From Tubulanus polymorphus (taxonomy: Eukaryota; Animalia; Nemertea): DNA of 64,000 nucleotides. The notes under the pieces were generated by a model. It did not search any database. It saw only the letters and a program-made list of their open reading frames with translations, and had not been told where the DNA came from. Where the stretch lies: the NCBI RefSeq assembly GCF_964204645.1, contig NC_134036.1, forward strand, positions 11,077,859 to 11,141,858. Reading direction: 5' to 3'. This document shows, piece by piece, positions 19,112-52,663 of this stretch. Each line of letters starts with the position of its first letter. Within the stretch, counting starts at the first letter, position 1. The position numbers and the translations under genes are program-made.

Positions 19112-19189
19112 GCTGTATGATGAAACATTAATACAGAAAAAAAATACAACAGCAAGTAATAGATATTAATGAGCAAATTGCACATAGCA

Positions 19190-25100: not shown

Positions 25101-25197
25101 TCCCTTCCACCTCCACACTATCAGCTACAATTGAATGAACAACAGATTGAATAATGATCAACAATTTCGGAATTGTAGCGGCAGAAATCCCTGACAT
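19190..25197. repeat. Tandem array of about 28 units (213-218 bp): near-invariant 100-bp palindromic block plus spacer variants A/B/C
   Basis: 27 intact copies of AATTGTACAACA-AA-TGTTGTACAATT, first at 19470 and last at 25068 (loop CA in the last), plus a degenerate copy at about 19246. Each lies within the inverted pair GCTGACAGTGTGG...CCACACTGTCAGC. Confidence 0.97.
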
Positions 25198-25207
25198 TAC
25201 AATCATA

Positions 25208-25438
25208 CTACTTCTCCTTCAACTTGTAATGTCGAACATGCTGTCGGATCTTGTTCAGCCCCTCCCTCACATTATTTTTGCTATACTTTTTTGCAATAGC
25301 CAATATGTCTTTGTTTTGTGCGGCAACGTCCCGCATTTCTTTCATCGTAGCTTGCGTCGGGAAATTTTCAAATGCCATCCTGATTTTTATTATCTCTGTG
25401 TTCGAAAATCCTGTTTTACCAACTACGGTTGAAAGATT
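25208..25438 (-). CDS. Terminal exon of YR gene (Myb/SANT-like helical domain)
   Basis: TATTTCAG acceptor, phase 0. 76 codons (NLSTVVGKTGFSNTEIIKIRMAFENF...LNKIRQHVRHYKLKEK) followed by TAG. Confidence 0.78.
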   Translation of the reverse strand, partial: NLSTVVGKTGFSNTEIIKIRMAFENFPTQATMKEMRDVAAQNKDILAIAKKYSKNNVREGLNKIRQHVRHYKLKEK

Positions 25439-28400
25439 CTGAAATACGGAAGCAATAATCTAGTCAATAATCATTGATGCACGCATCCTTAAGATATATT
25501 GCAATTACATTTCACAACTGGGCATATTCCTATACACATTAAGCTATGATTCATTCGCACAAAGGTTAAGCTGCTCGGCATGAACTTAGGCTCATTTCAT
25601 TTTTTAATTGAAAAACCTCTGACTAATATTTCTTAAAGAAAATCCAAATAAAAAGAACAACAATGACTAGTTTGATGTTTTGTCGCAGTAGAAGTAGCCA
25701 TTTTCAATGCGGGAAGAAAAAAGCTAGGTCATGATAGGCAGAAACATGATGGAGACGAAAGCAGAGATCTTGTCAGTATACTGTAATGTGCAGCTACATG
25801 TAGTTTTCTTTCCAGCTAATTCAGTTGTCGTTCAATGAAACCCGTAAGTTGAACATGTTCTACTCCAACGTTGATCCTGTGCAAATTTTCCTGTACTGAT
25901 CGATCAAATCTATGGTAATACATTTGTATAGTCGTCAACGGGTCAAGGAAATAAACTTTAGGTACCGTATCAGTAATTACCTCAGATAGGGTTTCTACGC
26001 GGCTTACACGTGTGACGCTCCCACTTTCAAACTGAAAAGTCAAAAGAGTAATAGAAAACAGATGGTTCGATTGCGAAAAAAACTAGGGGTCCACGGGGAC
26101 ACCGCTCACTTTGTACTTAGTTTTGATATTTACTGACCCCTCGTGAACGAGCAGAAATGAATGGCCTTAAAATTCACCGCAATGAAACCTGTCGTAAGCT
26201 TACAATATTTGCAATTCATTGTCGATTCAATGTTTATTATCTATTCAACTTCCAAGTTAAATGGATATACATGTACTAAAATTGAAGGCCCCAGGTGAAC
26301 ATAAATGTACAGAAACCAAATTACCTTCATCTTAATACACATGTTAAGAACACGTCATTAGCTACCCCTTAATTGTTACACCAGTTAATTGTGGTAACAA
26401 AATATACATTGTAGGTATTCAAATTACAAAAGTGCATTGATTTCAAAATTCAATGTCCTTTGGGGAGAAGAAACAGGATAATATCAGCTCCGTGCGATAT
26501 ATAGCTCCTCAACCATCTATTCACCAAATATCTAAACAACGCTGAAGACAAACCCTTTGAAAAATCCAAAAATTACTGAATTTCATCTGTAAGATCGTTC
26601 ACACGAAGAATTTATTTCGAAACGTTCACCAGGTTTAATCATCCGAGGCTAATCAGACGCGTTGTGGCGATAGAGTGAATCTGCCTGTGAAAAACACCGT
26701 ATTTGATTGGCTTAATATTTAGACTGGTGGCCGCTGAGCAATAAGCTGGGCCAACTTCGTTTATCGGAGTTAGTCGACTATGAAACTAAATGAAACCGAA
26801 TGTCTGTTAGTCGGAACTATGGTCCGTAAATCGCCGACCACGCGATTGAGCACGGTCGCTATAGTTTGGATCTAGGTTCAAGATGGCCGACACTGTGAAA
26901 TACGTAACCACAGAGCGTTCGGTTATTAGTTCCGACCACTAATCGAATAGCTACGAAAACCGAAGTTGGCCCAACACAGTCCCAAGTGGGCAGAATATTA
27001 CAGATTCAATCATCCTTTTCTGAAATTTCAGTTGATTCAAATTCCAGACTGAGGATGAAACTACAGTGGTACGTCGTTACAGCGAATTTCACGGGAACAG
27101 ATGTTTGTTATACCATCCTCCCTCGGCAGGTATTCGAACCCACCGAAATCGCTACACTGAGCCACAACACGCCACAGCACGAACCGTGGCATGCTCGTTG
27201 CCATCAGGTTCAAACCTGATGGCATAAACCTGATGGTTATAACCGATATTTTGTTCTATCCAGTATCAAATTCGTAACAACAAAGTACCATTGTATTACT
27301 CTATAACAAGGAAATCAGGCAATTACCTCAGAGCCAATATCGCTTCCACCATTGTTACTATCAGCACATTTAGCGGTCTGTAAAATACAATAAAACATTG
27401 CAGCAGGTGAAGTGTAATAGGGCTTTTGGGGTTTTTTCAAGAGGGGGTTTTGGGACACTGCATAACTGTTTCAATAGCCCTATAGTCCCTGGACCTTACA
27501 AACAGATAGCAATTAGTGAGCACAAATATTGCGAAGGTACATAAGCCGCAATCGCACGGAGACGATTTTGCCCTTGCCAAATTCGCACGGATCAGGCTCG
27601 AGTCCAATTTGGCCTGAGTCTATTAAGAGAGCACGTTCTCACGAAAACCACTCACTCGATACTAAACAATGCTCAAATAAAGTGCAATGAGTTTCTTTCG
27701 GAACCTAATAATTTACGGTACCAGTTGCAATTCACACACAATCATTTGTCTCAAGATTGGCTCGAACCTGGTTCGACGCTTTTGTTCGGGCGAGATTTGG
27801 CACGAGCGTCTCTATGGTGAAGCACACTACCCAGTCATACCTAGATACAGAGAGTTTCCCGAACAATCATGTCGGAGTGATAGTAAACTATTTACCTATA
27901 TCTGGTGACCCCTGTCCTTTCAGTCTAATAACATACGTTTTCAATAAAACAACCGTGCACAACTCAGACGGATCTACGTAGGGACCTATTTCGAGGGTGT
28001 TCCAAATTATAAAAGACCACTCAGTATTATCGGCTTCCTTATCCATACCCTTGTACCTCCGGATAATGTTGAAACTATATACAATATTTGACCATTTTCA
28101 TAGTTTTATGACTATAGGTGTTTTTATTTAAGCAACTCGTATAAAATCGCTTTGCTCCGTCGATTACTGCCTCGTGGTACAAATCGAATCGCCTTAAATA
28201 AATGACCCTACTCTCCACAACCGGAACCTGAATTTTCTGCGATTGAAAAAGCCGCCATTTTGTTTTTGATCTATCACTGAACGCTCCAATGTCGTAGCAA
28301 ATCGAATCAAAGCGCTTCGATGAGCGATTTGGCCGCGTTGAGTACTCGCGTTGGCGATTTGGTTAAATAAATGGACGTTGTAGGCAAATCGTTGTAGGCG

Positions 28401-31400
28401 CGTTGCTTAAATAAATGGGCGATTCGATTCGTGTTGATTCGAGATGCTTAAATAAAAACGCCTTATGTATTTTTACAAGAATGTGCTTAGGCATCCTCGC
28501 TAACCAGGGTTTGATTGCCGCTAGCTGAAGCTCACGCCTTGCCGCAAACCCTTCATTGGTCTATTATGCATTGCCCGATATATCTTGGCAAGGCGGCAAC
28601 CAGTTTATATGTTCAGCTCAGATGCATAGCGAATCAGCAAGTGTAAAACAACGCATCTGATTGGCTTAAAATACATAGACTGGTGGTCAATTAGTGGCAA
28701 CCTGTCGACCCAAGAAATCTTTGGCAATGTATATAGACCAATGAAGGGTTTGCAGCCAGGGTTTCCGTGTTAGCGTGAGCTTCAGCGGGCAGCAATCAAA
28801 CCCTCGCAAACGAGGATCGTACTAAAAGAAATTCAAGCTAAACGGTGGCGTCATGCGGAGAGGGAAAAAATCTGAATTTTGTGATTTTGTGATATACAAA
28901 ACGGTGTCCCGTATTTTAGACATGACTGTGCGAACTAAAATATAACCAACCAAGAGGTGATGTCCACAGCGAGCAACTGTTAGTTTGACCAACTGAACTG
29001 AAATGATGTATCTCGGAATATGGTCGGAAAATTAATTACTTATCTGTTTTTTAAGATAATAATAACTAATCATAAATTAGTTACAATTGAATGAGATTGA
29101 GATATTGGAGGATGTTCATTTTTGCATTAGAAGATTTTAGGGTTAACATGACCATGCATGTTTGCACAATATCAAATTCAACATAGCCAGCTAGGTTATT
29201 TTGGATCTCCACTTATCAATCATTGGATTATCATTTTCATTTTCCTGCTAGGACATAGTTCCCCAGGCTATAAAACATCCAATGAAATTCTAGATTTACC
29301 TCGACTTCCATTTTATCGTCTTCAAAAGGGGTTGAAATATTCTGAAAAGAAAACAATTTAGATTATTCAGAATTCATTTGTCCCGAAGTTAGGAGTCAAC
29401 TGTATGAAACAATTTATATTCTTAGGTATTTGTTTGTTTATAGTTTTCATTTTCATTCCTTATTTCTAAACCACTTGTTCTACTAAGTGACTGAAATGAA
29501 AATCGAATAAATCAAATATTTTCTTATTTATTTCCATAATCAAACTTAAGCGTGGGTTATGTCGACTTCTGGCTCGGTGCCTTCCGGTGCAATTGGATTT
29601 ATCGGTGACTAAAATTAGCCGCAAATAGCGCCAGTTGCAGCCTACGCTTTCGAGGGCAACCGACTTGGGCGCAACTGCGAATCGATGGAACTGAGGGTAG
29701 GAATTCCAGCCAGAGACCGCATATAAAGAGTAAAAATGTGACCGCTAACAATCGTCATCGGTATTTATTTATAAACTTTCAAATTCATATTCTAAATTTA
29801 TAACTTTTGAATTATTTTATAACTGAATTTGAATTTCTATTCTTAAAATGTTAATCACACTACTATCTGCAGTCCGTTCAGTTGCTAGTAATCGTAACCG
29901 CCATACGTAAGCGGGAAAGCAACTGGCTGTATCTCATACCCTGCTAGTCAGGTTCAGTTGCTGGAAATCACAGCGCAGTCAACATAAGTAGGGATACGAT
30001 TGCAGTTGCGCCGGTGTAGGCGTCGCGTTGCTGGTCGACAAAAGCCAGTATTTAAGCCTGGCTTAGGTCGAAAAGTGACGCGACGCATACCGATGCAACT
30101 GAGAGCAGCCCAAATTATCTCGACTGCAGAGAAACACTAACAGATAAAAGACACATAATTACCTCTGCTTCCGCCTGCTTATTTCCACCAGAGGTTGAAA
30201 TTGTCTAAAAGATTTGAAAAAAAATGGATTTCATGCATTACTAGAAGTTAAATTCTGATTTGCACAATTCAACTATCAGAATCATATATCATATTTAAAA
30301 CCGTTACATAGAAGATTGACTTTTACATCTCTATCAATTACGTATAATCAAAATATTTGACGGTTATATAGGTTATCTTATTATTCCTTACCTCTAAACC
30401 ACTTGTGTTGCTAAGCGATGACTGAAATAGAAAACACGGATTTTATCTATTTTCATAATTGTGGTGCATTTGTTTCTAATCAGGTGGCGTAAGATATTGG
30501 GTATATTCCCTTGTATAAAAGCAATGAGAAATCCGAATGCGCGTAAGTGACTGCCGATACACAGGCTCAGTGTTATCATTCTCAATGCTTCTACCGAATA
30601 CAAAACTATCTTTACTCCACTTTGATTCAGTCGATTCTCTGGAATAGTTATACGTGATTCTTAAAAGATGCGGATAAAACCCGACTGACGGAGCGCTCTG
30701 AATCGGATTTTAAATGAAAGTGTTTGTTTCAATTGAAAAAAGCCAAACGAATGTGGGTTTCCGTGTGTGAAGTGTCCCATAACAGCGATAAGAATTATCG
30801 TAAATCATAATTTCGGGTAATTAGGGTAAACGTAAGCGTTTTTGCAGTGATATGCTGCCAATACTGCATTGTTTTTGGTGATTAACAAATTGATTCATAT
30901 TCATTAGGAAATCAAGAAGTACCTGCATCAATGAATGCACCTTCGTTGCGGTCTTACGTGTTTCCTTTTCGCCAGACGTCAACATATAGAAACGCTCTTG
31001 CGTCATCAAACTATGGCTCATCAACTGAGCCAAACTTTCTCTTATGTCGGGGTCCTTGCCTCTACATTCTGTTGTGACAGATTTTCTGATGAGGCTATTA
31101 TTCACAACCCTTGCATAGCCGAGGGCTTTCTCGACATAGCTTTTCAAAGTTCTGTTTGAAACAAAGAATTCATAGAAATTATCGAATATCGAAAAGTCGA
31201 TATTGTGATTTGATTGTGGAGGCTTTTGAGCAATTACCATCGAATATGGAAGAATCTCGTATGATTCAAATATAAACACAATCAATCACAGCATCTTGAC
31301 AATTTCCTCATACAAAATCCCGTCAACGACATAGCAGACAGATGGAATGACTAATGAAAAGTGATAACGGTAATGAATTCAAATTTATGTAATCTCACTA

Positions 31401-34400
31401 TTCAGTAAGTCCAATGACACGATGCTGTCGTGGCTGCTTTACTAGAAACTTACATATATAACTGTTATGAATGCGTAATATCAAATGAAGCGTCGTTTGG
31501 GACGTTGTATTGACTTTTCTTATAATACGTATCTGTTGACAAAGCCTCATATGTTGAATTCTATGTCAATATATGAGGGCTTCGCCATGTAACAGATGGA
31601 TGAGAACTGCCAACATTTTTGTACACACAATCGGAATAATATCCCAAACGGTGCCTCATAAATCAATGACGGACGAATTCCATTCTCTCTTCGCTTTGGT
31701 GCAACAGAATTTGAGCATTTCCGCATCAAGCTAAATCTATCATATCAGAGTAATTGTTACTTCTGATCGAAACATGATGTTTAAAGATAACATTGATTTG
31801 TTTGGTTTGATTGGTTAACATTGATTTGTTTGTAGGGATTGCCAACTTCATCAATTACTAGAGTACATACTACAGTCTACCTCCGATGTAACGTCGTTGG
31901 ATTTACCGTAGATTCATCTTATCGTATTATTTCCCAGTTTCCAATTTTTCCTTCTAAAATATTAGGCCTTAAAGAACCCTCGAATATACCGTATTTTTCA
32001 TAACGTAGATCACTTATATCGACGTATAGATTATTTGATCCCAATTAGTCAAATCAACGTAATTATCCTCGAATGTAACGTATCGCAAAAAATTAAAAAA
32101 TGAGAAAAAATATAACATGTATCACAGATAGTATCACAGATAACTATCGGAAAAATCCAGGGAAACTTACTGGTTTATTTTATTAGAATCTTTAGGGTTT
32201 CCACCCCAAGAGACGAAAATCTGCTGCCTCTCATTTCTGATGTTAACATTTTCGATTTGTGGCAGCACCCTATCAGCATATAGCTGTAACTGATTGAATA
32301 GGGCGCTGTCTAGAAACAAATGGACAACGGGAGAGGTTGTCACAGTTTTGTGACCATCATCCAGTCCAGTTACCTAGAAAATATAAAAATTTATTAGTTG
32401 CATTTATAATTTCCAAATCAAGCCTATGAGGTACAATATGAGTCAAAATTCAGTTGGTTTGTTTCCTGCGAAAGGCAACCGAGGGATCCAAATTTAGACA
32501 TGTTCCTACCAACCATATCCAAGTTACTTAAAAATCCAGACCCTAGAAGTAACAAGCAGAAGCTGCTCTTTGTACCAATACTTGAGTTATAGCTAGACAC
32601 TGGCCCACGTCCTTAGCAGGGCCTACCCTTCATGACCAGTGGCCGAGACAATCCATGCCCAATTGAGAGATTTGAAAAGTTCAATATTCGAAGCCCTCTG
32701 GTGAACATATACAGCGAACAGTGCCCGGAAACTCACCACAATCAATTGAAATTACAGACACGCGGATCGAAAGTACACGCAATAGCTCGTTGAGACCCAG
32801 ATGGGCTAAACGTGAACCAATTTCTGGGACAGATAAATGACAACACGTGTAACGATACTGCATAGAAATATAATCATAAAGTTGTGATCTCATTTTGAAA
32901 TTTTGCAGTCAAATTGATCGAAAACGATAATTTTACAAACAAGGGATCCTTATACAGACATTTGTGGTCTCCTGCTAAACTTGACCGAAAAGTTTATGTT
33001 GTGTAAATTGAAGAAAATACCAAATCTCCAATATTTACTACCCTTTTGAAATCATTTGGACATCAATGAAATAGCACTCCCATCTGGATATCTGGATATA
33101 TCACCAGATGTGCTCTCCTACCATATCAATACTACCCAACATAACCAAAATCCAATACATGATCACAACGTTATAGCCTAGCCCCACGCACATGGCAAGG
33201 AAAAAAGCATTTTTTCCTCGTGAAAAAGGTTTTCGATAATTTTTCTTATACCATGTTGAACGTTTTATAGCGTTTTGCCGTATGCGGCGGGCTTTTGGCT
33301 TCATCCAAGCATATTACTAATACCAGAGTGCATATTCGAGATTTATGGATAATTCAAGAAGAAATCATCTAGAATTCTGTTCCATTGATATTTTTCTGCA
33401 AATTCAAATTTAAGAATACGAATCTTTTTCTGCAATTTATGTAGCACATTATATCAGATTCAAAACCTGTTGAATCCATATTAATATGGGAATTGGGCAT
33501 GACTAATTCATAAGATTATCATACATGCATCATAAAAACACAAATGACAAAACTCAAATATAACTAACTTTAAATCGAAAAAAAAGTGAAACGAATGCCA
33601 TGGTAAAATCAAACAGAGAATCGTCTGAATCCAACATGGCGTCAAGAGGCAACTGATGGCGCATGCGCGAGGCATATCTCATTGGATCTCCAAAACCCAT
33701 ACCGAAACGAAATAGAACTAACTTTAAATCGAAAAAAAAGTGAAACGAATGCCATGGTAAAATCAAAATCTCACCTTCATGCAATACAAATCGCCCTCCA
33801 TAGTGGCATTTCTCACGTGTTTTATGGTCAAATTTGCGATCGGCCCAGCTCTGCAGGGATTTTGTACCGAAATTGCAAATATGAGGTAGTTACGAATACA
33901 GCTGAGGGTTTTTCGATCGACTGCTTCATCCGACATCAGTGATGTCACTGCCCTCCTCGCCTCGTCTGAGTACAATACATTCCTTATCTCTGTTGGATTC
34001 AGACGATTCTCTGAAATAATCACATTCAATTCTCAAAAATTCGGGAAAATCTTACTTATCAGGCGCACCAACTGCTCTGAATTTGACCTTGAAGAAAAAT
34101 GTTTTGTTTAAATTGAAAAAAAAGCAAAGCCAGTCTTTCCAGCCTGAGGCGAGACTATAAGCACACCAACCACTATGAGTCGGATTTTAAATAAAAGTAT
34201 GTTAGGTTAAAATAGAAAAAAAGCGAAGCGTAAATGTCTTCAAGTAGACATTATAGACTCAGGAGGGAATCGAACCCCCGTGCCAGTCTCTCCAGCCTGA
34301 GGAGAGACCGGGCGCGCCAACCGCTCTGAGTCGGATTTTAAATAAAAATATATTTGGTTAAATTGAAAAAAGCGAAGCTTATAGGTCTATCAAGTAGACT

Positions 34401-37400
34401 TTATAGACTCAGGAGGGAATCGAACCCCCGTGCCAGCCTCTCCAGCCTGAGGAGAGACCGGGCGCGCCAACCGCTCTGAGTCGGATTTTAAATAAAAATA
34501 TATTTGGTTAAATTGAAAAAAGCGAAGCTTATAGGTCTATCAAGTAGACTTTATAGACTCAGGAGGGAATCGAACCCCCGTGCCAGTCTCTCCAGCCTGA
34601 GGAGAGACCGGGCGCGCCAACCGCTCTGAGTCGGATTTCAAATAAAAATTTGGTTGGGTTTTAAATTGAAAAAAAAGCGAAGCTTAAAGGTGCCAGTCTC
34701 TCCAGCCGAGGAGACACTCGGTGTGCCAACTGCTCTGAAAACAGATCTTCTGGTCCCGTGAAGTTCACTGTAACGAGGTTCCACTGTATTTAGCAAGAAA
34801 ACTGTCAATCCATTGTAACCTATGAAAAGTGTTCGAATCAACATACCGCTGTCTATCAATTGTTTATCGATATAGCGCTTGGCCTTGGTCTTCTTGCCGA
34901 TCGTCGTCCAATTCACGGTGCTCGCGTGCGAACGACTGACCAGTTCCGCCGTTTGATTCATTTTTGATACACCGACCTTTAAAAAGATAGTAGGCCTATA
35001 TGATGCGGATTTCAAGAAAATGTTCGACGATTTCTTGATTTTTCAATTAGTATATACTTACAGATTCGACGTACAACAAAAATTTACGCCAAACCGCAAT
35101 GTAGGCTTCAATAGTGCCTGGCTGTTTTCCTAAGTCAACCATTGATTTCAGATATGCTTTTAGTTTACATTCGTTTAGCGTAAACTGCGTTGCGACAAGC
35201 ATGTCTCGAATCCGCTGCCTTCTTTGAGAGGCAGCGTTTGTGTCGACGTTTTGTAATCCGCAGCTCCAAGAAATGAAATTCGAGACAATGTTGTCTGTCG
35301 GGAGCTGGGGATACTCTGAATCCGGTTTCTTTTTGATTTCGTTCGGTACGGCGCTTAAAATTTCATCTGCTAGTTGTGTATCTGATTGATCGGTTTCGAC
35401 CGCTTGCACTAAGGTAGAAATCAATGATAATGATAATCGACTGATTGATATAACAAGTATCAAAATATCTCAGGTAGTTATAAACATGAACTTTTAAAAT
35501 TGTAGAATCTTAAGAATACATGAGCTTCATCTATACTATAAGAGACAAATGGCGAAACTTTGTCACGAGTTGGTGCGGTCTGTGCGCTATGCAGCTTTTG
35601 GTACCAAATGAAAGATACTGGTCGTGTGTAGTTTAAGATAAAATTTTTGCTGAAACGATAAATTTTAGATAGATCTTTGGACCCTTTAAGTTTGGACGCT
35701 CTGCGCGACGTCACTGCGCTCGCTGATCCAAATAAACAGTGCCCGCTGATTTATCTTAGCTATCTGTTCGAAATATTCAAAGGCTTATTCAAAGTCAAAT
35801 ACACTACGCTTAGTTACAGATTACGCAATTGCAGCAGTAAGACCGCCATACAGCCAGTAGAGGAGAGCCCTAAAACACATTAATTATAATCAATAATCAA
35901 CAAGATATATGATGATTAAAGTGTAATAAACTCACGAGCTACGTCATAACTTCCTTTACAATACGGCCGGTGTTTATCGAGGCGATAGACGCGCATTCTG
36001 CAATGCAGACATTCTTTTTGTTTTCGAGCGTCTTTGTTTTTATTATCGCGCCGACGTTTTCGATATTGCGGTGGGCTTGATCTGAAAATTTTAAGGGTCG
36101 GCCGTGAACATTCGACATCTTACATGGAACAAACTTTCCATAATCAATTTCAATTTGATCTACTGTGAAAATGTTCTTGTTCATTACCCTGATGTACATA
36201 CTGTATAAAACTGACACAAACGATAAACTTTAAAAGTAAGTAGAAATTCAATTAACTAAAACTTCTAGAGTTATCATCGATGAAACAAAAAAGCCACAAA
36301 GAAGTGTCATTCTGACCAGTACCTCCAGTTCAGTGAATCCGTTCCGGACCAGTGGTGCACGAGTCGCAGGTGTCTCGGCACTCGTGTCACCGCCTTCTTG
36401 CACACCGGACACTTATGTGTTCTTCTTATGTATGTATCCTTCTTTTCTATATATCAATTACCATTCATATTTGTTCAAATCTATCTGTTATTTACAAAGA
36501 CGGACAAAAAGAAACACATCGGCCCTTTTGAGCTAGTGATATTTTACCATTATTTGATTTCGATTTCGAAGCAACCGACGACTCTTGTTCCATTTCTAGC
36601 ATATTTCGAAGAAAATTCATGAAAAGAAAATGTATTTTGAGAATAGAGCCCCAGGATGAGCATAGTAAACTTGAAAATTGATAATATCGAGCTTTTTGAT
36701 GCGCAGAGAGCATTTATATTTTACCATTATTTGATGTCAAAGCCGGCGAATCTTGTTCCATTTCTAGCAATTTTCGAAACACAATTCATAAAAAAAGAAA
36801 AAAATATGTTTAGAATAGGGGCCAGAGATCAGCATGATAAACCTGAAAATTGATGAAAGCTGCCGCAGTTGAGGACTTGTGTGATAGAGTATCTGGGAGG
36901 ACCGCTGGGCCGTTAGAGGCTGGGCAACACAGCCAGTTTCACAAAAGGTATAGCAATGTGTATATATCATTTCGGTGATTTTAAGAGACTTTTCCGTAGA
37001 GTTAAGTCTCTGGAGACTTATTTTCACCTGGTTCATAGAAGAATTCTATATTGCACAATGCTTAGTACGGCATTTAAGATTGAATTGAATTTTTCCTCGT
37101 TTTCCTGCGTTTAAATACTATACTGGATGGTTCCTTTATATAATTAGTGTCGTCATAGTTTGAATAGTTTATTTTTAATTTTGCAATCGGTCACAGTCTG
37201 GATCACTTCTCGGATCTCTTCTCGTATTCACAATAAATATCAAGGAAACACTTTTAGTCAGGGGAGAGAGAGTCAGATATGCCGAGATAAGGCTCGATAC
37301 TCAACGTGTTACAGCCGATAAAGACCGACCTGCGAGTCGTGAGCTTGGACATAAAGTTGAATAGATATTCGCCTCATGTAATCGAAAATATACTTTTTAG

Positions 37401-40400
37401 CATTCTCCTCTATGGTTTTGGAATTAAAGAGACGTTCGACAAATGATTGCTTCCGATAGAGCGCGCCGCTTTGTATTAAGTCCCCCTATACGCACGATAT
37501 CAGAGATGCAGGTGTGAACGTAGATATATGTACATTAACACAAAATACCAAGAGGTCTACTGTGTAGGCTTTTAGCTCAGCTCTGCATGCAATTCTGTAA
37601 CAAAGACTGGGGGGAGGCAATTGTTCAAGAGTCAAATTTTAGATAAAATATTTGCTGCAATTGAAAAAAGTGAACTTTTAAAGTCTGTCAAGTAGACATT
37701 AGGCCCGGGAGGGAATCGAGCCCCCGGGCCAGTCTCTCCAACCTAAGGAGAGACTGGGCGCGCCAACCACCCCTAAATCGGTTTTAAATAAAGATGTCTG
37801 TTTTAACTGAAAAAAGCGAAACTTAAAGGTCTATCAAGTAGACATTAGCTATAGACTCAGGAGGGAATCGAACCCCCGTGCCAGTCTCTCCAGCCAGAGG
37901 AGAGACCGGGCGCGCCAACCGCTCTGAGTCGGATTTTAAATAAAAATATGTTTGGTTAAATTGAAAAAAGCGAAGCTTAAAAGCCTATCAAGTAGACATT
38001 ATAGACTCAGGAGGGAATCGAGACTCAGGAGGGAATCGAACCCCCGTGCCAGTCTCTCCAGCCTGAGGAGAGACCGGGCGCGCCAACCGCTCTGAGTCGG
38101 ATTTTAAATAAAAGTATGTTAGGTTAAAATAGAAAAAAGGTGAAGCGTAAATGTCTTCAAGTAGACATTATAGACTCAGGAGGGAATCGAACCCCCGTGC
38201 CAGTCTCTCCAGCCTGAGGAGAGACCGGGCGCGCCAACCGCTCTGAGTCGGATTTTAAATAAAAGTATGTTAGGTTAAAATAGAAAAAAGCGTAGCGTAA
38301 ATGTCTTCAAGTAGACATTATAGACTCAGGAGGGAATCGAACCCCCGTGCCAGTCTCTCCAGCCTGAGGAGAGACCGGGCGCGCCAACCGCTCTGAGTCG
38401 GATTTTAGATGAAATATATGATTGTTTCAATTAAAAAAAGCGAAGCTTTAAGGTCTATCAAGTAGACATTATCATAGACTCAGGAGGGAATCGAACGCTC
38501 TTATACCCCGGCACATTGATTCTCCAAACCGACGCTTCCATACTAAGTCAAAAGTATTTTGGCTTTTATAATGTACATTACCACCATTTCCTGGCTATAC
38601 GGTAACTCATAAACGGTTCGACGCAAGATCAGGAAATGAAATGAAATGAAAAATAGAACTCTCCGGATGCTAATTCCTGCATTTGAACAGTGACAGACGT
38701 TACAACTAGAATGATTTAGAATAACAGTGACAAAAAGAAAACCATTTTTCATAGGGGGATTCCAGACAAACTTGAATCCACCATTTAGAAGCGTCGGAGC
38801 ATCGAAGCATCAGAGTAGAGAAGCGTCTGAGTATCGATCCAACCTCTCTGAATCGGATTGAACTAGAGGTCCAGGGATAGCAAAAAAGCTGAAAGGTATC
38901 TAATTGCAAAATATGTGAGATAACCTGTTGAAGCGGTAGAATCTATCGATGGCTCATAGTCGGCATCATCATCATTATCATCATCAATGTCATCAGCGTT
39001 TGCTCTTGGACCCGAGTGGTTTTTTTCCATGTCATATGTTTCTGCAAAAAAATCAAAGTATATCATTCAATTTCTGTATTAGAATTACATTGTAAGATGT
39101 TGTCTGCGTGCACGTGCGTGTTTGTAATATCTAAATATCTGTATATATACAAGCCTTTAAGATATAAAAAATGCTCCGCGATTGATGTTGACGGGCATTG
39201 CTTCTCGAGGGACAAAGCCATTTTGTACAATATATTGAACTCTTCGATATGTACGTTCTGTTTTTCCTGATCGTCAACTGGAATATTTAAGACAGAGTAT
39301 ACGTGAGTCCAAAACCCGCAGTACCATGAAAACTATATTCTCATCGAGAAAGAAGTAACATTATATTTTAATTACACCATTTTCCTTTCAAGCGTTGAAA
39401 ATACGACGAGATGCTTTTCGAGCTATCTTTTTCAAAGAGTTCCATCGTCATGCCATGAATAGTGTTGAAGATGCGGATCTGTGCATCCTGTTTTTCTTCA
39501 ACTGTATATGAGATATTGTAGGGAGCATTAGTGATGTCCATGCAGAAACAAAGGGGAAATAGAATAATTGTATGAAATACAAACAGGAAGAAGACTATTC
39601 GATTATAATAATTATTCGACTTACAAACACTTGACTCCGTATGGTGAGGTGGTGTAGGGGGGATAACATCCTCATCCGTTCTGACGACTTGGTTAACTTA
39701 AATATAACACAAATAAAAGTTAGGATTAATCACTAGTGTCCTCGTGAATCAAACAATAACCAGTCAGTCCATTGAAATATAGTGTATTGCTCCATATAAA
39801 TCAAATGTAATGAGCACATACAACATAAGCTTAAGGCTGGCTTATGTCGACATGTCGACTGCGCTCCGATTCGCAGCAACTGAGGCCGACTATCGGGATA
39901 CGGGATCCTCCCAGTTGCTTCAGGTTTATTTCGGTTACGATTACTGGCAACTGCAGCGGCTCAGAGGGTCACGTGATTAAGCTTTTTGTGGATAGATTTG
40001 AATTATTTTGAATTATTGGGAAATATCTTTCTATTAGAAAGCAATTTCTTTAAGATCTTAATCTTTCTGATTCTTTTTTGAATACAATGTGCTAGCATGA
40101 TTCTACCAATTTCGTTTCTAGATCTTCGGTCCAGTCCAAATTTACACGGATGCCGAATGTGCCCGTGCCTGTTTGGCCGACCAAAAACGTGAGACCATGC
40201 CCGAGCCAAGTTTTAAAAGCCGGGTCAAAAGCCGCGTGATCACACAGAGACGATTTGGCCCGTGCTAAATGGGCACGGAACAAGTCAGAGTCGAATTTGG
40301 CCCGTGCCTGATTAGAGAGCGCGTCCACACGTAAACCACTCACTCGATACTTAACAATGCTCTAATAAAGTGATGTGAGTTTCTTACGGAAACTGTAGCA

Positions 40401-43400
40401 ATTCACACACAATGATTTGGCCCGGGCTAAAATTTTGCTCGAGCCTGGTCCGACGTTTTTAGTCGTGTCAAAGAGGCATTTGGACCACGTGTGAATAGTT
40501 GTTCCGGGATAAAAGCGCTCGTATGATAAAGGCTGGCTTAATATGTCATCATCGCCAGCCAGTGTTTCATTGCCACCCGCCAAAGCTCACGCCAGCACAT
40601 ACCCTGGCCGCAGACCCTTCATTAGTATATTACATTTCCCAATATTTCTTGGGCAGACAGGTTTCCGCTCAGCGCCCACCAGTCTATATATCTAGAGATG
40701 TATTGTTTTTACCGGTTAGTTTGCTCTATAAATACCACGCATCTGACTGGCTAGATATATAGACTGTAGGGCGTTGAACAGCAACCAGTCACCCAAGAAA
40801 TTTTGGGCGATATTATAGACCAGTGAAGGGTTTAAGCCGGCTTGCGACGATCACCCAACGCCTACAGACTCGTCGCAAGCGGTAACCTGCTAGTTTCCAT
40901 GTTCAAAATAATTATGCACCAGGCAGAAGACTATTCGATTATAATAATTATTCGACTTACAAACACTTGACTCCGTATGGTGAGGTGGTGTAGGGGGGAT
41001 AACATCCTCATCCGTTCTGACGACTTGGTTAACTTAAATATAACACAAATAAAAGTTAAAATTAATCACTAGTGTCCTCGTGAATCAAACAATATGACCA
41101 GTCAGTCCATTGGGTTTGCGTTGGCATGAGCTCCGGCGGGCGGCAATCAAACCCTGGCAAGCGGGGATTGCTTATGTCGAAAAGCGGGGTTTCGACGCAA
41201 CTGGGCTTATTAACTGGGTTTTTGACTATGGTCAGGCCAATTTTTGGGCTGAAGATGTATCTTGGGTAGATACACGTATAAACCAAATATCAAGATAATC
41301 CATTGAAGCGTCTTCAAAACTTCCCAAAATAACTGGATTCCGAAACTAAGTGAACGCAATAGCCCGCTCGGACTTAAGTGGATTATGACGTGAGCGGCCT
41401 CTCGGTATGCAGTTCTTTATTAAGTACATCTAGAAACTTATTTAGGAATCAATCCCCGCATAAAGTTGAATTGATTCAGTTATGTTGCCCATGCAGTTAA
41501 AAAGGGGAAATAGTATACGCAAGTTAAAATACAAATAGCCAGAAGACTATTCAATAAATGATGATTATTCAATACACACCTGACGTATGGTGAGGTGGTG
41601 TGGCGGGGATAATGTCCTCATTGCGAGTACTGGCGACTTCATAACCTTTAATATTACAAAAATAAGCTTTATAGGATAAACACCAGTTTTTTCGTATGAA
41701 TATAAGTATTACTTACATATGTCCATTTCCTTGTCAATGACGGAATTGCTGGTTTCGTCATTGATACCATTCCCTAGGAAATGACGCAACAAAATGACAG
41801 AACAACGTGCAGTTTTTTCAGAGATATTTATGAAAAAAAAGTATCAATTGGCCTATATGATGTTCATGACTTGGTATTTAACAAGCTCAAAAGCCTTCAA
41901 ATCTGAAAATTTTCAATCAAACCAATATTCAGTGTTCCAGATATGAAAAAAATAGAAATTTAACACCCATCTTTAAAACCTACAAAGGCATTTTGCTGTA
42001 TTTGAGCAGTTTTGGGAGGGGAGTGGCAAATTTGATGCCCCACCGCAAAATATCAATTCGTTGTATACTATCATAGACAGGAACACTGTTAGTTGGAAAA
42101 AAATAATAAATTAAAAAAGATTCAACTCCAATTTGAACACATATTACAACAGATACCTGATTTGCGATTCGTTTTTTTCATCTATTATAAACAATAAATA
42201 CGGATAGATACGTAAGGTGAATTAACCCATATTTTGATAGCCAGAAAAATGTCTAAGATAAACAGATAACTTACCATTCTCCACGGATTGTCCTTCACTC
42301 CGTAATCATAGCGGAGTTCGGTATGGGCTGGGATATCTTTAAGAGCGAAAAAACACAAGTGTGGGGCGTCGAATCGATCGAACATTATCTTTGGCGTGCA
42401 ATTTTGCAGCCCCTTCCAGCCATCGTTGATAAGACGACCCAGGCTTTTATCTTCAATGGTCGCATCAATGCTAAAAGTGCAAAATACATACCAAATTTTC
42501 TACCACTTCAAATTATATCTATCATGTAACATGTACAATATTTCTTCTAAACTATACTATGTAGTAGTGATAGGGCATCCATCAATTTTTTTTTCTAGCG
42601 CTAAATCTTAGATGTTATATGCATGGATGAAGTGCTAGGTCTACAAGTCGAATCGAAATTATACCGTATAAAGCGTAAAAGCCGAATTCCTAGACCTTAA
42701 AAATCGTGTATATTTTTGGACATAATAAATTTTTTAGGAAGAGAGTCCAGAAATTTATGATGATTGTCAATGTTGTGTGGGACACAATCGAAATTTAAAA
42801 AATGGTGGCATATCATCCAACCAGTCCGGTCGGTGTGCAGAAGTCATTGTATATACGCGTTCAACCCCCGATATACGGCTCACATCGGTGCAGAATGATT
42901 TGGCGTTATAGAGGGTATGGCGGTATATCGGGAGTGTTTTACTATGTATTTGTATAGGGGTGTCCATTGAGAAAATCTGGCGGTAGGCGAGGGTGGCGGT
43001 GTATGGGAGGGCGGTATATGGGGGGTTGACTGTACTCTTGCCTTCTGGTGTGACAGTAGAGTAATTTTTCCATATACATGAAAATAATTTGTCAAAAGTG
43101 TAGTTAATTCAATCAACTCTTATGGTTTTTTTCACATACGAGGTCGCTGGCTGAGGTCACGTTAGGCCTGCTGTTATATGCTGGCTGCTGTGTTGCACTC
43201 ACACATCCCCGAATGTAGGTTAGAGTAGGTTAGAGTTACTTCAAGTCAATTAGACAGTTATTTTAATCGACGGAACAATTGAAATTTTGAGATGCTCCCT
43301 TATCCCTGTAAAAATCTCACACAGTAAAACAAAACTAAGGGCAAAATATCAGGATATCTATCTATTGGTTTTAACCTTGAGGAATAATTACCGGGGGATT

Positions 43401-49400: not shown

Positions 49401-52400
49401 ATAGATAAGTTCCACTAGACAGATTGACACAGACAGAAGGAAGACATAGGCCTACGGGATAGACCTTGAAGCCTACAGAAAAACAAGACGGGATGCAAGA
49501 CACAGAAAGAAACAAAATCCACGAGGCTTATTACACAGATAAACACAAAACACACAGATCAGAAGACAAGACCAGATCGCCTACATAACAGTAGACTAGA
49601 TAGACAGACACAAAGAAAAGACCCACTATATGGATTAACACAAAACAGACAGGGGAGAAAACAGAAAGATAAGGTCCATTGCTTGAATTAGGCCATGCAC
49701 GAAACAGACAGGTTAGAAGGCAGAATGACATAAAGCACTGTACGGATAAACACACATTAAACACACATTCGACAGACAGAAAGACAAGTAAGAGACGAAA
49801 AACAAAACAGAAAGATGAATACAGAATGACATGGCACATAAAACGAGCATAGAGACGAGTTTTTGCATGTTTTTAGTCAAGTAATTTAGCAGATAGTCCA
49901 ATAAACACTAATCCGTAAATTGTAGATAATAGAATTCGATGAATTTTAATGTGATAAAATTTACTGACCCGAAGCTACAATGTTTCGGCTGCTGACTGAC
50001 AGCCATCATCAGGTGGAATGCCTCAATCATTCCACCTGATGATGGCTGTCAGTCAGCAGCCGCAATGTGGTGGTTTCGAATGAACTTTATCATGTAGAAT
50101 TTGAATTGTGGGACTTATTCGATTGCTTGAGTAAAATTTTGAGATATTCAATTTTCTATTGGATGTAGGATTTTTAACTATTGGTAGTATGATTTTGAAA
50201 ATGTGAATTTGAAAGGCAAACATTCAGTGATTTGGACATATCGTATTGTCAGATATCAAAATAGGACTACTGAGTTAAAATCAAACTGAGAGTAAAGTTG
50301 TTATAAAACGATGCTGTAATCTGCAAGATTTTTGATCCACTTGATCTACTTTATAAAGTAAAACCAGTAAAAACTTGTAGGCTATACGTTTTGTTTTTGA
50401 GGCCCTATCAATAGAATAATGTGGGTTTTAATTTGGTGTGAACTGAACTGTCTACAGGCCCTCCCCCAGAAAATTTTTGTAAATTTGAAGAATTTTAAAT
50501 TTGACCTATTTGCATTGATAGCAAAGGTCTTATTAAGGGAAGAAATTTAATGTACAATGATTTCAGCCCTCACTAATCAACCAATAATCATACTAACTGT
50601 AACATTGGGTACGAGTAAGCAAATTGACAAAATAACTAAAATGTAATAGGTCCCTATTTAGATAGGCCTATGTTTAATCTAAATGTATTATACCAATCTA
50701 TTCGCTGCCCTAATGACATTTTTTGAATGGTTACTTTAGTAAAAATATCTAGCCTTTGACTAAACAGAGAATGTTGGCCCCTGCATTTTGAATCTAGGGG
50801 GAACCTCTTATTCTGATGCCTATGAGTTTCTAAATTATATTACAGTAGGCCAATACTTACCACATGAAATTTCGTGTTTTTTCATGAATGATGTACACAT
50901 AGGTGGTGTCAGTAATCTTCGGGTCTGATATGCTCCTCACAGTTCCTCTATATTCTAGAAGGAAGTCTCCTTTAGCGAAGGGTTTGAGGGTGAAAACGCC
51001 TCGGCCTGCAAAATAATATTCAAAAAGGCACTCCTATGAATGAAAAAAATATTAGATTGGGCCACACCAAAAAATCATGTGTTTTCGGGCCAGGGCAATC
51101 ACAAAAATGGATATGTAGGTAGGGAATATTTTTTTTCTTTTTGTAGAAAAATATTTCAGGCTCTATTGACAGTGGGTACTAGGTAGGTCAATAATTTTTA
51201 GAGAATGAAATTTCCAGTTGAAAATATGATTAACAGCTAGAAGACCACAATAATAAAAGGAAGTTGCGTTTTTTCTAGGCCTACAATAAACTATAAAAAC
51301 TAGGGGTCCAGGGACACAATGCCACTTGGTAAGTGGTTTGAAATGCTCAACAATCTGACAATTTGCAACAATGATGGTCTCCAAGAACATCAGAAATTTT
51401 TGGAATTCTGTGGCCCCTCCCCTCCGCCTCGACCAATCAGTATTTTTCTGCAGACATTTTCTGTTTTCCAGAATTTTTCTGATTTTCTAAATGCAGAAAA
51501 ATTCTGTAATTCAGAAGTTTCTCCCAAGTGTCATTTCTGGACATGTATAACAAAAATCTGTAAATAAAACTTTAGGCCTAGATTGTAGAGCAAGAACGAG
51601 GTCCATAATATCTATTTTATACAGAAATTTGGTTGTTTTCAATGACCTAAACATGTCAAACATAATAGGGCTCATCATCCTCTCATCATAAAACCACAGT
51701 TCAAGTACGAATAAAATGAGTCAAAAACCTTACCGTAGAGCAGTAAAAAACTCCAAATTGACTAGGCCTACCAGTATCTAAGACATCTTGGATGACCTAC
51801 ACACATTAAAAACAGTAGTCCCATCCTCCTTTTGCCCTTAATACAATACCAAGTTATATAAGAAAATCCGTAGGCTCCTTTAAAACATTAGACTATGAAG
51901 CGGGAATAAGCTCCAAAATGGCTATGGCAGCCATTTTAGATTACCAGTCAAAAACAATAGGGTTCATCCTCCTCACACCTAAAGTCAAAAGAAAATCAAC
52001 TAAAAACTTAAGCCTGTAGAGTGGGAACAACATCTGCACGCCCGCACGCACATCCGCACAGACACAAGCCATGACAATACCCCTCGCATCCTACAGCCAA
52101 GCCGAGGGTAAAAAGTGTGTTTAGCGATCAAAAATGGCTACCGGACAGCTAGTGTACGTGATTCGTAAGGTAGATAGACCTACCATGCCCGTAGATCAAA
52201 AATTGGACAAAAAGCGAACAGAATAATTGCTACCGGGGTAACTGGGATCATTCATTTATTATGTACGCATAAAATTCTAATTTTTCAACCCCCCTCTGTA
52301 CGCAAAATCGGCCATTGTTTCATATACGTAAAGCATTACAGTACGTAATTGCACTGACCCCTCTCCCTCCCCTGGTGTGTACATAATAAACGAATGACCC

Positions 52401-52663
52401 CACTGGGAAGCCCCAAGAAGGCTAAAAAACAAATTTCGTGCCCATTCTTAATATTTAGAGATTCAGTAGGTCTAGTGCTTAAGCTACATTATTACAGGCA
52501 CTACAAAACTGAGGTGCCCAAATAGGATGTTCAAAATCAAAACATTCATACCAATATCAGCATCGATTATCCGCTCGGAAAATCCATCAGGATCGGCATC
52601 CGGATTCTTCTCCACCCAATTTAAGGCAACATCTGACTGAGGAATTCTTTTTCGCCGCGACAT
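25208..52663 (-). CDS. Spliced gene model: SET domain + C2H2/C2HC zinc fingers + tyrosine recombinase + Myb/SANT-like C-terminus (about 918 aa, 19 coding exons; Crypton-like YR)
   Basis: Exons on the minus strand: 52663-52552, 51005-50861, 42470-42275, 42181-42157, 41773-41717, 41645-41580, 41032-40961, 39696-39625, 39501-39376, 39277-39155 (needs a GC donor), 39041-38925, 36446-36323, 36081-35936, 35408-35062, 34976-34847, 34010-33775, 32373-32171, 31151-30923, 25438-25208. All other junctions are GT-AG, phases match, the total is 2757 nt and there is no internal stop. The SET-to-YR join (38925 to 36446) is the weakest link, so two tandem genes is possible. Confidence 0.7.
28117..28462. mobile_element. 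MITE (Harbinger-like)
   Basis: TIR GGTGTTTTTATTTAAGCA / TGCTTAAATAAAAACGCC. Confidence 0.8.
28493..28817. mobile_element. MITE with long TIRs; relatives at 40548-41168 and 46795-46900
   Basis: ATCCTCG...AGGGTTTGATTGCCGC...AAGCTCACGC / GCGTGAGCTT...GCAATCAAACCCT...CGAGGAT. Confidence 0.8.
30923..31151 (-). CDS. YR catalytic exon 3 (box II Arg, His, nucleophile Tyr)
   Basis: NNSLI-R-KSVTT...LAQLMS-H-SLMTQERF-Y. Phase-2 acceptor and CAG|GTACTT donor. Confidence 0.9.
32171..32373 (-). CDS. YR catalytic exon 2 (HKT, catalytic Lys)
   Basis: VTGLDDG-HKT-VTTSPVVHLFLDSALFNQLQLY...QQIFVSWGGNP. TTTTCTAG acceptor and GTAAGT donor; absent from the ORF track. Confidence 0.88.
33775..34010 (-). CDS. YR catalytic exon 1 (box I Arg)
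   Basis: IRNYLIFAISVQNPC-R-AGPIANLT; TTTCAG acceptor and GTGAGA donor. Confidence 0.88.
34130..34740 (-). ncRNA. Tandem tRNA-like units, 150-bp period (full copies 34256-34332, 34406-34482, 34556-34632, plus partial copies)
   Basis: GACTCAG/CTGAGTC acceptor stem, GGGGG-TTCGATT-CCCTC T-arm (B box), 11-bp central stem with 7-nt loop, and a downstream T6 run. Confidence 0.7.
34847..35408 (-). CDS. YR core-binding (SAM-like) domain exons 35408-35062 and 34976-34847
   Basis: ...LKAYLKSMVDLGKQPGTIEAYIAVWRKFLLYVES resembles the integrase N-terminal helix pattern P.TI..Y....F..F. GT-AG sites and phases match. Confidence 0.8.
35936..36081 (-). CDS. Basic (NLS-like) plus C2HC zinc-finger exon
   Basis: TTTTCAG acceptor and GTGAGT donor. 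Encodes SSPPQYRKRRRDNKNKDARKQKE-CLHC-RMRVYRLDK-H-RPY-C, in a different frame from track ORF 35939..36217. Confidence 0.8.
36323..36446 (-). CDS. C2H2 zinc-finger exon
   Basis: KKDTYIRRTHK-CPVC-KKAVTRVPR-HLRLVH-HW. TAG acceptor and phase-2 GT donor; not in the ORF track. Confidence 0.85.
37690..38500 (-). ncRNA. Second tandem cluster of the same tRNA-like unit (about 5 full copies plus partials)
   Basis: Same 77-nt core at about 37703 (diverged), 37854, 38022, 38173 and 38323; partial copies at 38004 and 38477. Confidence 0.7.
38925..42181 (-). CDS. Eight small linker exons (Pro-rich repeats, two related helical exons, acidic exon)
   Basis: Mostly symmetric phase-1 exons: EDIIPATPPHHTS, EDVIPPTPPHHTES (twice), EEKQDAQIRIFN..., DDQEKQNVHIEEFN..., DDIDDDNDDDADYEPS. 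Confidence 0.6.
40140..40510. repeat. Dispersed repeat family, also at about 16320-16590 and 27560-27810
   Basis: Shared AAACCACTCACTC...AAACAATGCT...AAAGTG...TGAGTT and GATTTGGCCCG motifs. Confidence 0.75.
42275..42470 (-). CDS. SET domain C-terminal exon (SETD8/KMT5A/PR-Set7-like)
   Basis: Encodes CIDATIEDKSLGRLINDG...PHLCFFALKDIPAHTELRYDYGVKDNPWRM. The split codon TG+C gives Cys with the previous exon; TTTTAG and GTAAGT splice sites. Confidence 0.92.
45726..46649. mobile_element. Non-autonomous DNA transposon with TIRs of about 33 bp, AT flanks and TTTACCCGTCAAA subterminal repeats
   Basis: GGCATAGATATTCCGTCAAAATGAAACATCAAA / TTTGGTGTTTCATTTTGACAGAATATCTATGCC. Confidence 0.85.
47101..47222. 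mobile_element. Fold-back remnant of a Tigger-like MITE
   Basis: 28-bp perfect stem TTCATCGGATATAACAAATAAACAATTG with its complement; ends in ...GAGTTTCCACTG-TA. Confidence 0.7.
47286..47923. mobile_element. PIF/Harbinger MITE
   Basis: TIR GGCCACAC.AAAA / TTTTGGTGTGGCC with TSD TAA; a related left end lies at about 51060. Confidence 0.85.
49400..49860. repeat. Low-complexity ACAG/AGAC-rich tract
   Basis: Degenerate tetranucleotide repeats. Confidence 0.8.
49981..50075. ncRNA. Inverted pair of minimal hammerhead-ribozyme-like motifs (Penelope-like terminus)
   Basis: Minus strand reads CCAC-CTGATGA-T-GGCTG-TCAGTCAG-CAGCC-GAAAC-ATT-GTA. The plus copy has GAAA changed to GCAA. Confidence 0.6.
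50861..51005 (-). CDS. SET domain N-terminal exon
   Basis: TTTTGCAG acceptor and GTAAGT donor. Encodes GRGVFTLKPFAKGDFLLEYRG..., the classic SET motif I and EY.G motif. Confidence 0.9.
51570..52115 (-). mobile_element. Helentron/HINE (DINE-1-like) non-autonomous element
   Basis: Minus strand begins TTTTACCCTCG...CGAGGGGTATTG, followed by a GTGCGGATGTGCGTGCGGGCGTGC microsatellite-like tract. The distal end is approximate. Confidence 0.6.
52245..52401. mobile_element. Small Harbinger-like MITE
   Basis: GGGATCATTCATTTATTATGTAC / GTACATAATAAACGAATGACCCC. Confidence 0.75.
52552..52663 (-). CDS. First coding exon (pre-SET region)
   Basis: TTTAAAG acceptor, then G-ATG. Encodes MSRRKRIPQSDVALNWVEKNPDADPDGFSERIIDADI and ends in a phase-1 GTATGA donor. 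Confidence 0.8.

Follow-up and report, generated by a model that had tools for sequence, protein, structure and literature searches.

A KMT5A-like SET gene ahead of a zinc-finger tyrosine recombinase gene in the nemertean Tubulanus polymorphus, probably as one transposon-derived unit

We analyzed a 64,000-nucleotide stretch of the genome of the nemertean Tubulanus polymorphus (hereafter the window; C12:11077859-11141858 of the 268-Mb assembly), which lies less than 0.5 Mb from the contig end and in which, on the minus strand, a KMT5A-like SET gene stands upstream of a gene for a zinc-finger (ZnF) protein with the catalytic residues of a tyrosine recombinase (YR). We propose, tentatively and with a confidence somewhat short of even, that the locus is one transposon-derived unit, long resident and under selection, with two products, a SET protein and a ZnF-YR protein. 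The pairing of SET and YR probably reflects one transposon-derived unit, chance not being favored; that the two are joined as a single polypeptide is possible but less likely. Their membership in one unit and their mode of expression we infer from the exons, domains, conservation, synteny and selection described below.

In our model, the unit, present as one copy, would be an old representative of those YR elements of this genome in which a KMT5A-like SET gene precedes the recombinase, its introns enlarged by later insertions. It would have three parts, namely, a 3-exon SET gene; a gene of the family we call “YR1,” encoding zinc fingers, a core-binding region, the YR catalytic region and a C-terminal helical module; and an array of 216-bp repeats just downstream. 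We posit that the SET and YR parts are most likely two open reading frames (ORFs), expressed from one pre-mRNA or from two transcripts. The last SET exon (exon B) would splice to a strong acceptor at 39277, so that its frame would end, out of register, within an acidic exon, and the recombinase would start at an ATG at 39221. This recombinase would cut and rejoin DNA via the tyrosine of its ERFY motif, with the 216-bp array as a candidate substrate, and the SET domain, which has Asp for the usual His of its NH motif, may serve as a chromatin-binding module that is altered or lacks catalysis.

The SET gene and the recombinase gene

Profile, PDB and homology searches were run exon by exon, and phases and split codons were computed for the joined chain; compatible phases count for little by themselves (roughly one in three per junction). 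Three exons between 52663 and 42275, all on the minus strand like every exon of the two genes, encode what is, judged by sequence, a complete KMT5A/SET8-like SET domain. Exon 1 (52552..52663, 112 nt) was placed by its sequence and splice site; it opens with the ATG at 52663, leaves 1 nt of a split codon, and is homologous to the first exon of the SET gene of a 24-kb transposon of the same genome (Smith-Waterman z 6.5). Exon A (50861..51005, 145 nt) holds the N-terminal part of the domain with the GRG motif and covers positions 1-27 of the Pfam SET model (PF00856; E 0.005). Exon B (42275..42470, 196 nt) holds the C-terminal part, with RLINDG and ELRYDYG, ends in phase 0, and scores 27.1 bits against the same model (cut-off 22.4; E 5.8e-6). 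For both exons A and B the best PDB matches are KMT5A/SET8 chains (E 4e-7 for exon B), in agreement with the original prediction of a histone-methyltransferase-like domain.

All three SET exons have canonical splice sites, and the two intron positions are identical in the SET gene of the 24-kb transposon (L019/T). The first junction (52552->51005) reads ...IDADIG/RGVF, which appears to resemble KMT5A. The 8.4-kb intron between exons A and B (50860-42471) offers a single strong, phase-compatible donor/acceptor pair, and the resulting ...FM-C-IDAT... also resembles KMT5A. The 3' end of exon B coincides exactly with the end of the SET domain and is followed by a strong donor; the SET gene of the 24-kb transposon likewise has a donor directly past the domain.

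How close is this domain to KMT5A (SET8/PR-Set7), the H4K20 monomethyltransferase? It is complete from the N-flank to a C-terminal ...PW, and both the GxG cofactor motif (GRGVF) and the tyrosines of ELRYDYG are kept. It differs at the NH motif, where RLINHS of KMT5A aligns with RLINDG. In SET methyltransferases, the histidine of the NH(S/C) motif is usually needed for cofactor binding and catalysis. The ND variant is common to several transposon-borne SET paralogues, others of which keep NH, and the locus SET groups with such transposon-borne paralogues. Elsewhere in the genome, a sequence at C2:24848995-24849183 is much closer to KMT5A than the locus SET is, with RLINHS and the ...SHPW tail both kept, and may be the host KMT5A orthologue.

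The recombinase gene follows on the same strand. ZnF exon 1 (36323..36446) carries a C-x2-C ... H-x4-H pattern with weak Pfam zinc-finger matches and has no in-frame ATG; homology to a paralogue on C3 begins within it, at 36417. ZnF exon 2 (35936..36081) carries C-x2-C ... H-x3-C and is frameshifted in the C3 copy. The next exon (35062..35408), with a strong GTGAGT donor, an acceptor of 15/20 pyrimidines, and paralogues on C3, C2/C21 and C8, is a putative core-binding (SAM-like) region, assigned from its position and helical pattern, with no database match. The catalytic residues are spread over three exons: the Arg I exon (33775..34008), in which the catalytic R of NPCRAG is invariant in 7 family members; the HKT exon (32171..32373), in which H-K-T, including the catalytic Lys, is invariant in 6 members; and the Arg II/His/Tyr exon (30923..31151), in which the R, K, S, H and Y of LIRKS, MSH and ERFY are invariant in 9 sequences. 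The last exon (25208..25438) encodes a conserved, helical C-terminal module and the stop codon (25210-25208).

In family alignments whose members come from the T. polymorphus genome and two metagenome fragments, R (CRAG), K (HKT), R (LIRKS), H (MSHS) and Y (RFY) appear in order, with canonical spacing and without variation, and the motifs of the original prediction (NPCRAG, HKT, SLIRK, MSH and ERFY) are all present. Conservation does not extend to the His three residues ahead of Arg II, where the locus recombinase has Ser. The exon junctions are phase-compatible through good splice sites, with the exception of the ZnF exon 1 acceptor at 36446, whose poor pyrimidine tract fails our filter of at least 10/20. 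The two joins singled out at the outset, 38925->36446 and 30923->25438, are phase-compatible, and the frames are intact down to the stop.

The 30923->25438 junction spans a long intron and carries the gene into its last exon. A homologue of that exon lies 2.4 kb past the catalytic exon of a YR1 paralogue on C4 (47% identity, E 7e-13), and the exon is also related to the C-terminal exon of the YR of a Polinton-like family (z 7.4). Because homologues of the last exon follow the YRs of C4 and of the Polinton-like family, the long intron is supported. The AlphaFold2 (AF2) model of the exon is helical, with a predicted local distance difference test (pLDDT) score of 74, and a PDB search of the model gave no match. 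A “Myb-like” label was considered for this exon and dropped in light of that result and of a similarity to the Myb exon of the 24-kb element that is not significant. Just downstream of the catalytic exon, at 30571-30660 (minus strand), there is a degenerate remnant of the exon for Arg I, with 50% identity across 30 aa. The C3 copy contains it too, and so it would be an old internal duplication.

Similarity of the recombinase to known YRs was also sought at the level of fold. Profile searches of single recombinase exons and of a paralogue against Pfam, PHROGs and PDB gave no YR match, nor did Pfam DUF3504 or Phage_integrase match exon by exon. With hhalign, the best alignment of the Arg I exon to Cre falls at Cre 154-188 (E 0.033, low probability), which corresponds to box I with R173; that of the HKT exon falls at 228-252, downstream of the Arg I match. 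The Arg II/His/Tyr exon aligns best to lambda Int at 324-347, also at low probability, a segment that holds H333 and Y342. The language-model neighbors of a 41%-identical paralogue are tyrosine recombinase clusters, 21 of 30 with PF00589. A HMMER search of a protein library with the catalytic exon returned 6 weak matches, all of them fragments or repeat proteins, and among these there was neither a full-length relative nor a SET-YR protein, the contigs of two of the fragments being too short to include the upstream region. A homologous-protein search with a Polinton-type YR paralogue gave no match, and the AF2 model of that paralogue (pLDDT 51) was too poor for a structure search.

Copies, selection and the adjoining repeat array

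The target unit occurs genome-wide as one intact copy and three fragments (C3, C4 and a second C12 site, C12b), with no termini recognized. The C3 duplicate, an intron-containing recombinase copy at C3:14162379-14173518, matches locus DNA 30236-36417, introns included, and the partial duplicate C12b matches 31044-34132. Both have decayed: the C3 copy has frameshifts in the ZnF2 and core-binding exons and reads GQEA for GHKT, with loss of the Lys, and C12b carries stop codons. The locus copy of YR1 is the only intact one. Against it, the ratio of nonsynonymous to synonymous substitution rates (dN/dS) is 0.16 for C3 (dS 0.34) and 0.12 for C12b (dS 0.22), values that support purifying selection on the YR part, one of the two possibilities (the other being recent activity) raised in the original prediction. 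In the surroundings of the C3 duplicate we also noted a YR2-like ORF (C3:14180595-14181725), some 7 kb upstream, and, 33 kb downstream, a degenerate SET (C3:14129549).

Could the locus nonetheless be a dead relic, that is, an immobile old transposon copy, unexpressed, whose frames are open by chance? Consistent with that idea are its single copy, the termini and (TA)n flanks that we did not recognize at the unit, very large repeat-filled introns, the altered NH motif of the SET domain, and the polyadenylation signals that we did not find. However, the locus keeps some 2.26 kb of coding sequence and over 20 splice sites undamaged, whereas sister copies of the same age (dS 0.22-0.34) are broken, and the low dN/dS argues against open frames by chance. 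We consider a relic very improbable.

The third part of the proposed unit is the array of 216-bp repeats at 19189..25158, which comprises 27.7 units by Tandem Repeats Finder (TRF) and begins 50 bp past the recombinase stop codon. Outside this array, the genome has the 216-bp unit only at C4:18460718-18461172, with 72-77% identity, and that match lies directly downstream of the last exon of the C4 YR1 paralogue, in the identical orientation relative to the gene. Because its sole other match adjoins the last exon of that paralogue, the array appears to travel with the YR1 gene. It probably belongs to the same element as the recombinase gene, and we suggest it as a candidate terminal region or recombination site of the YR1 element.

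Repeats also fill the introns, as had been foreseen for introns of up to 8.4 kb; those at 50860-42471 (8.4 kb) and 30922-25439 (5.5 kb) carry repeats, tRNA-like arrays of 150 bp among them. In two introns of the recombinase gene, at 34129-34691 and 37659-38496, there are 150-bp tandem arrays of a tRNA-like repeat, whose unit occurs once in the C3 recombinase copy.

One unit, one polypeptide or chance neighbors

Does the order of SET and YR at the locus have parallels? A SET gene followed on the same strand, within 5-25 kb, by a YR is found in at least five other independent element families of this genome. One of them is the 24-kb transposon already mentioned, a (TA)n SET+OTU+YR+Myb element with 5 copies in which SET precedes YR on one strand. 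Its C1 copy (~C1:18271674-18295482) is flanked by (TA)n and carries the 3-exon SET gene and a 744-aa ORF, in which an OTU domain (Pfam E 7e-6) is accompanied by zinc fingers and an Arg I box; downstream of this ORF come exons for K and H/Y and weakly Myb-like sequence. Further SET->YR pairs lie at C2:9614169->9609224/9606839, C2:15375764->15371993/15369671, C12:9933798->9911746/9909709 and C12:9975672->9961674, and twice on C8 an OTU ORF precedes a YR1-like core-binding exon. SET-then-YR is, in our view, a recurrent modular transposon architecture, and the locus pair fits it.

The 24-kb transposon is the closest parallel. It has a homologous 3-exon SET gene, whose SET domain is 41-61% identical to that of the locus and has the ND variant, and the same one-strand order of SET, acidic stretch, zinc fingers, YR (R..K..R..H..Y) and a C-terminal helical or Myb-like exon. 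It differs in that the target unit is single copy, in the size of a shared SET intron (8.4 kb at the locus versus 170 bp in the transposon), and in having the OTU domain and (TA)n flanks, neither of which was found at the target unit.

An alternative is that a transposon-type SET gene and a YR1 gene are unrelated neighbors, placed in tandem by chance at a transposon-rich chromosome end. Both gene families are enriched on C12 at 9.3-11.4 Mb, the nearest relative of the locus SET belongs to an element with a YR of a different family, and YR1 paralogues are found without SET. Two features between the genes would also suit separate transcription units. The ATG at 39221, in the context AAAATGG, could serve to start the YR. 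The other is an exon-like segment, “39b” (39371..39501, minus strand), which duplicates a linker exon (38% identity over 45 aa by tblastn); it shares the acceptor context of 39277, has no donor where the linker exon has its own, and reads on into a stop codon that ATTAAA (39372) overlaps. Such a SET, however, would be expected to have a partner YR given the SET-then-YR order of at least five other families, and we identified neither a terminal exon in phase with SET exon B nor a polyadenylation signal past it. On balance, a chance pairing strikes us as improbable. The segments 39371-39501 and 39155-39277 can also be described simply as a tandem pair of related exon-like segments, of which the upstream member is degenerate and has lost its donor.

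If the genes do form one unit, how are their coding sequences connected? Two exons lie between the halves. The linker exon (39155..39332) has two acceptors, at 39277 and 39332; contains the ATG at 39221, in the recombinase frame; and ends at 39155 with a GC donor (39154-39153), as the original prediction had it. The acidic linker exon (38925..39041, 117 nt) holds, in its other frame, the stop that would end an out-of-frame SET ORF. For neither exon did we find a homologue in the rest of the genome or in the 24-kb element. The acceptor at 39277 is strong, needs one carried base, and is out of frame with SET exon B, whereas that at 39332 is weaker (12/20 pyrimidines) and in frame. If SET exon B is spliced to the stronger acceptor, the SET ORF is shifted in frame and stops within the acidic exon.

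These exons bear directly on the more ambitious interpretation that the locus is a true fusion gene, with one polypeptide of ~750 aa or more made up of SET, an acidic linker, two ZnFs and the YR. The 19 exons and 2757 nt proposed for it could not be reproduced; what we obtain is a chain of 12 exons (2262 nt, 754 codons) that stays open through canonical or GC splice sites from the ATG at 52663 to the stop at 25208. A fusion is further suggested by the strong donor placed just where the SET domain ends, matched at the same position in the transposon-borne SET gene, by the recurrence of SET->YR synteny, and by ZnF exon 1, which has no in-frame ATG, so that the YR needs upstream coding exons. Yet the chain joins SET to YR solely through the weaker acceptor, the stronger one shifting the frame and terminating it; the linker exons are unique and have no homologues to verify them; and the ZnF1 acceptor is weak. 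We regard a single fused polypeptide as unlikely, if a serious contender, and prefer two ORFs within one transposon-derived unit.

Several observations weigh against that preferred reading. C12 around the locus is dense in SET and YR genes, and the chance of such an adjacency is about 1 in 10. Neither AATAAA nor ATTAAA was found within ~500 nt past the stop codon or past SET exon B; (TA)n flanks and an OTU domain were not found at the target unit, with no (TA)7 or longer nearby. No SET was found upstream of any other YR1-family copy. The pairwise similarity of the YR1 exons to the YR of the 24-kb transposon is not significant, and the YR fold was not confirmed by Pfam, PHROGs, PDB or AlphaFold.

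Known systems, significance and neighboring genes

Among known systems, SETMAR is the obvious point of comparison: it is a primate fusion, experimentally established, in which a SET domain is spliced to a mariner (DDE) transposase. Both there and here, a histone-methyltransferase-type SET lies upstream of a transposon enzyme. In contrast, the partner here is a YR, a fusion here is only a hypothesis, and the SET subfamily is different, SETMAR being only a weak PDB match (E 0.11). We know of few transposon enzymes coupled to chromatin writers, SETMAR being the textbook case, and a literature search found no report of a SET-YR pairing in the searchable literature.

Cryptons offer a second comparison, as eukaryotic, intron-containing YR genes without reverse transcriptase (Kojima & Jurka 2011, PMC3212892). 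Hosts can domesticate single-copy Crypton derivatives within their own genes, and most of the catalytic tetrad has been lost in such domesticated (DUF3504) domains (PMC3212892). The target recombinase gene is likewise an intron-containing, eukaryotic YR gene. It departs from Cryptons in keeping R, K, R, H and Y, as against the loss in DUF3504, and in its SET module, the same source naming no SET or methyltransferase module (PMC3212892). Cryptons are recognized as mobile elements with several copies and definable ends that code for a YR and nothing else, and with one intact copy, three fragments and no termini found, we do not regard membership of the target recombinase among the Cryptons as established.

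The third comparison is with Preplasmiviricota, that is, with the YRs of virophages and Polinton-like viruses. Among the closest relatives that we could detect in the genome for the YR1 catalytic exon is a spliced YR, carried by an 11.7-kb element with a family-B DNA polymerase (PolB), which is 41% identical to that exon and whose language-model neighbors include Preplasmiviricota clusters. The likeness is limited to one exon, at only 36-41% identity, and the target unit, unlike these elements, is without polymerase, ATPase and capsid genes.

The 11.7-kb unit itself is found at C12:9546918-9558623 (minus) and C12:10759624-10771409 (plus) (loci L023-L026), in copies that are 98-99% identical. 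Its ORFs include a protein-primed family-B DNA polymerase (YSDTDS) as well as ATPase-like, TBP-like and C2H2 zinc-finger ORFs, and it has a spliced tyrosine recombinase instead of an rve integrase. Its gene content suggests a Polinton-like element residing in an animal genome.

What would a SET module do for a recombinase? This genome repeatedly puts a KMT5A-like SET gene ahead of tyrosine recombinases of different families, and the target locus is the one copy that looks long resident, single copy and selected. Should it prove to be expressed, the locus could reveal the role of the SET module for the recombinase, be it in target choice, silencing evasion or host benefit, and whether a SET-YR pair can be co-opted by a host. 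We can further speculate about a recombinase that the host has domesticated without loss of catalytic competence, physically coupled to the SET module and acting on the adjacent 216-bp array. This is a long shot; if true, it would mean chromatin-guided or chromatin-marking site-specific recombination and a YR counterpart of SETMAR with its active site kept.

The window contains one other YR (56949-59237, plus strand), which stands head to head with the SET gene. Its identity to the OTU-ZnF-YR ORF of the 24-kb transposon is 47-51%. That transposon ORF matches only this YR (56961-59237, plus strand) in the window and not the target gene. No OTU, K, H/Y or Myb exons that would go with this second YR were detectable within the 64 kb, and it is probably a truncated copy. 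A further SET gene lies just past the end of the window, in C12:11141859-11151858 (L022), with an exon at 3624-3854 of that locus (minus strand). In DNA it matches the SET at C12:9933798 with 99.1% identity; that SET has a YR of its own 22 kb downstream, also on its strand, and the second YR more plausibly pairs, we infer, with the L022 SET than with the target SET. Toward the other end of the window, 11419-12366 (plus strand) is an intronless 315-aa ORF that resembles a seven-transmembrane receptor.

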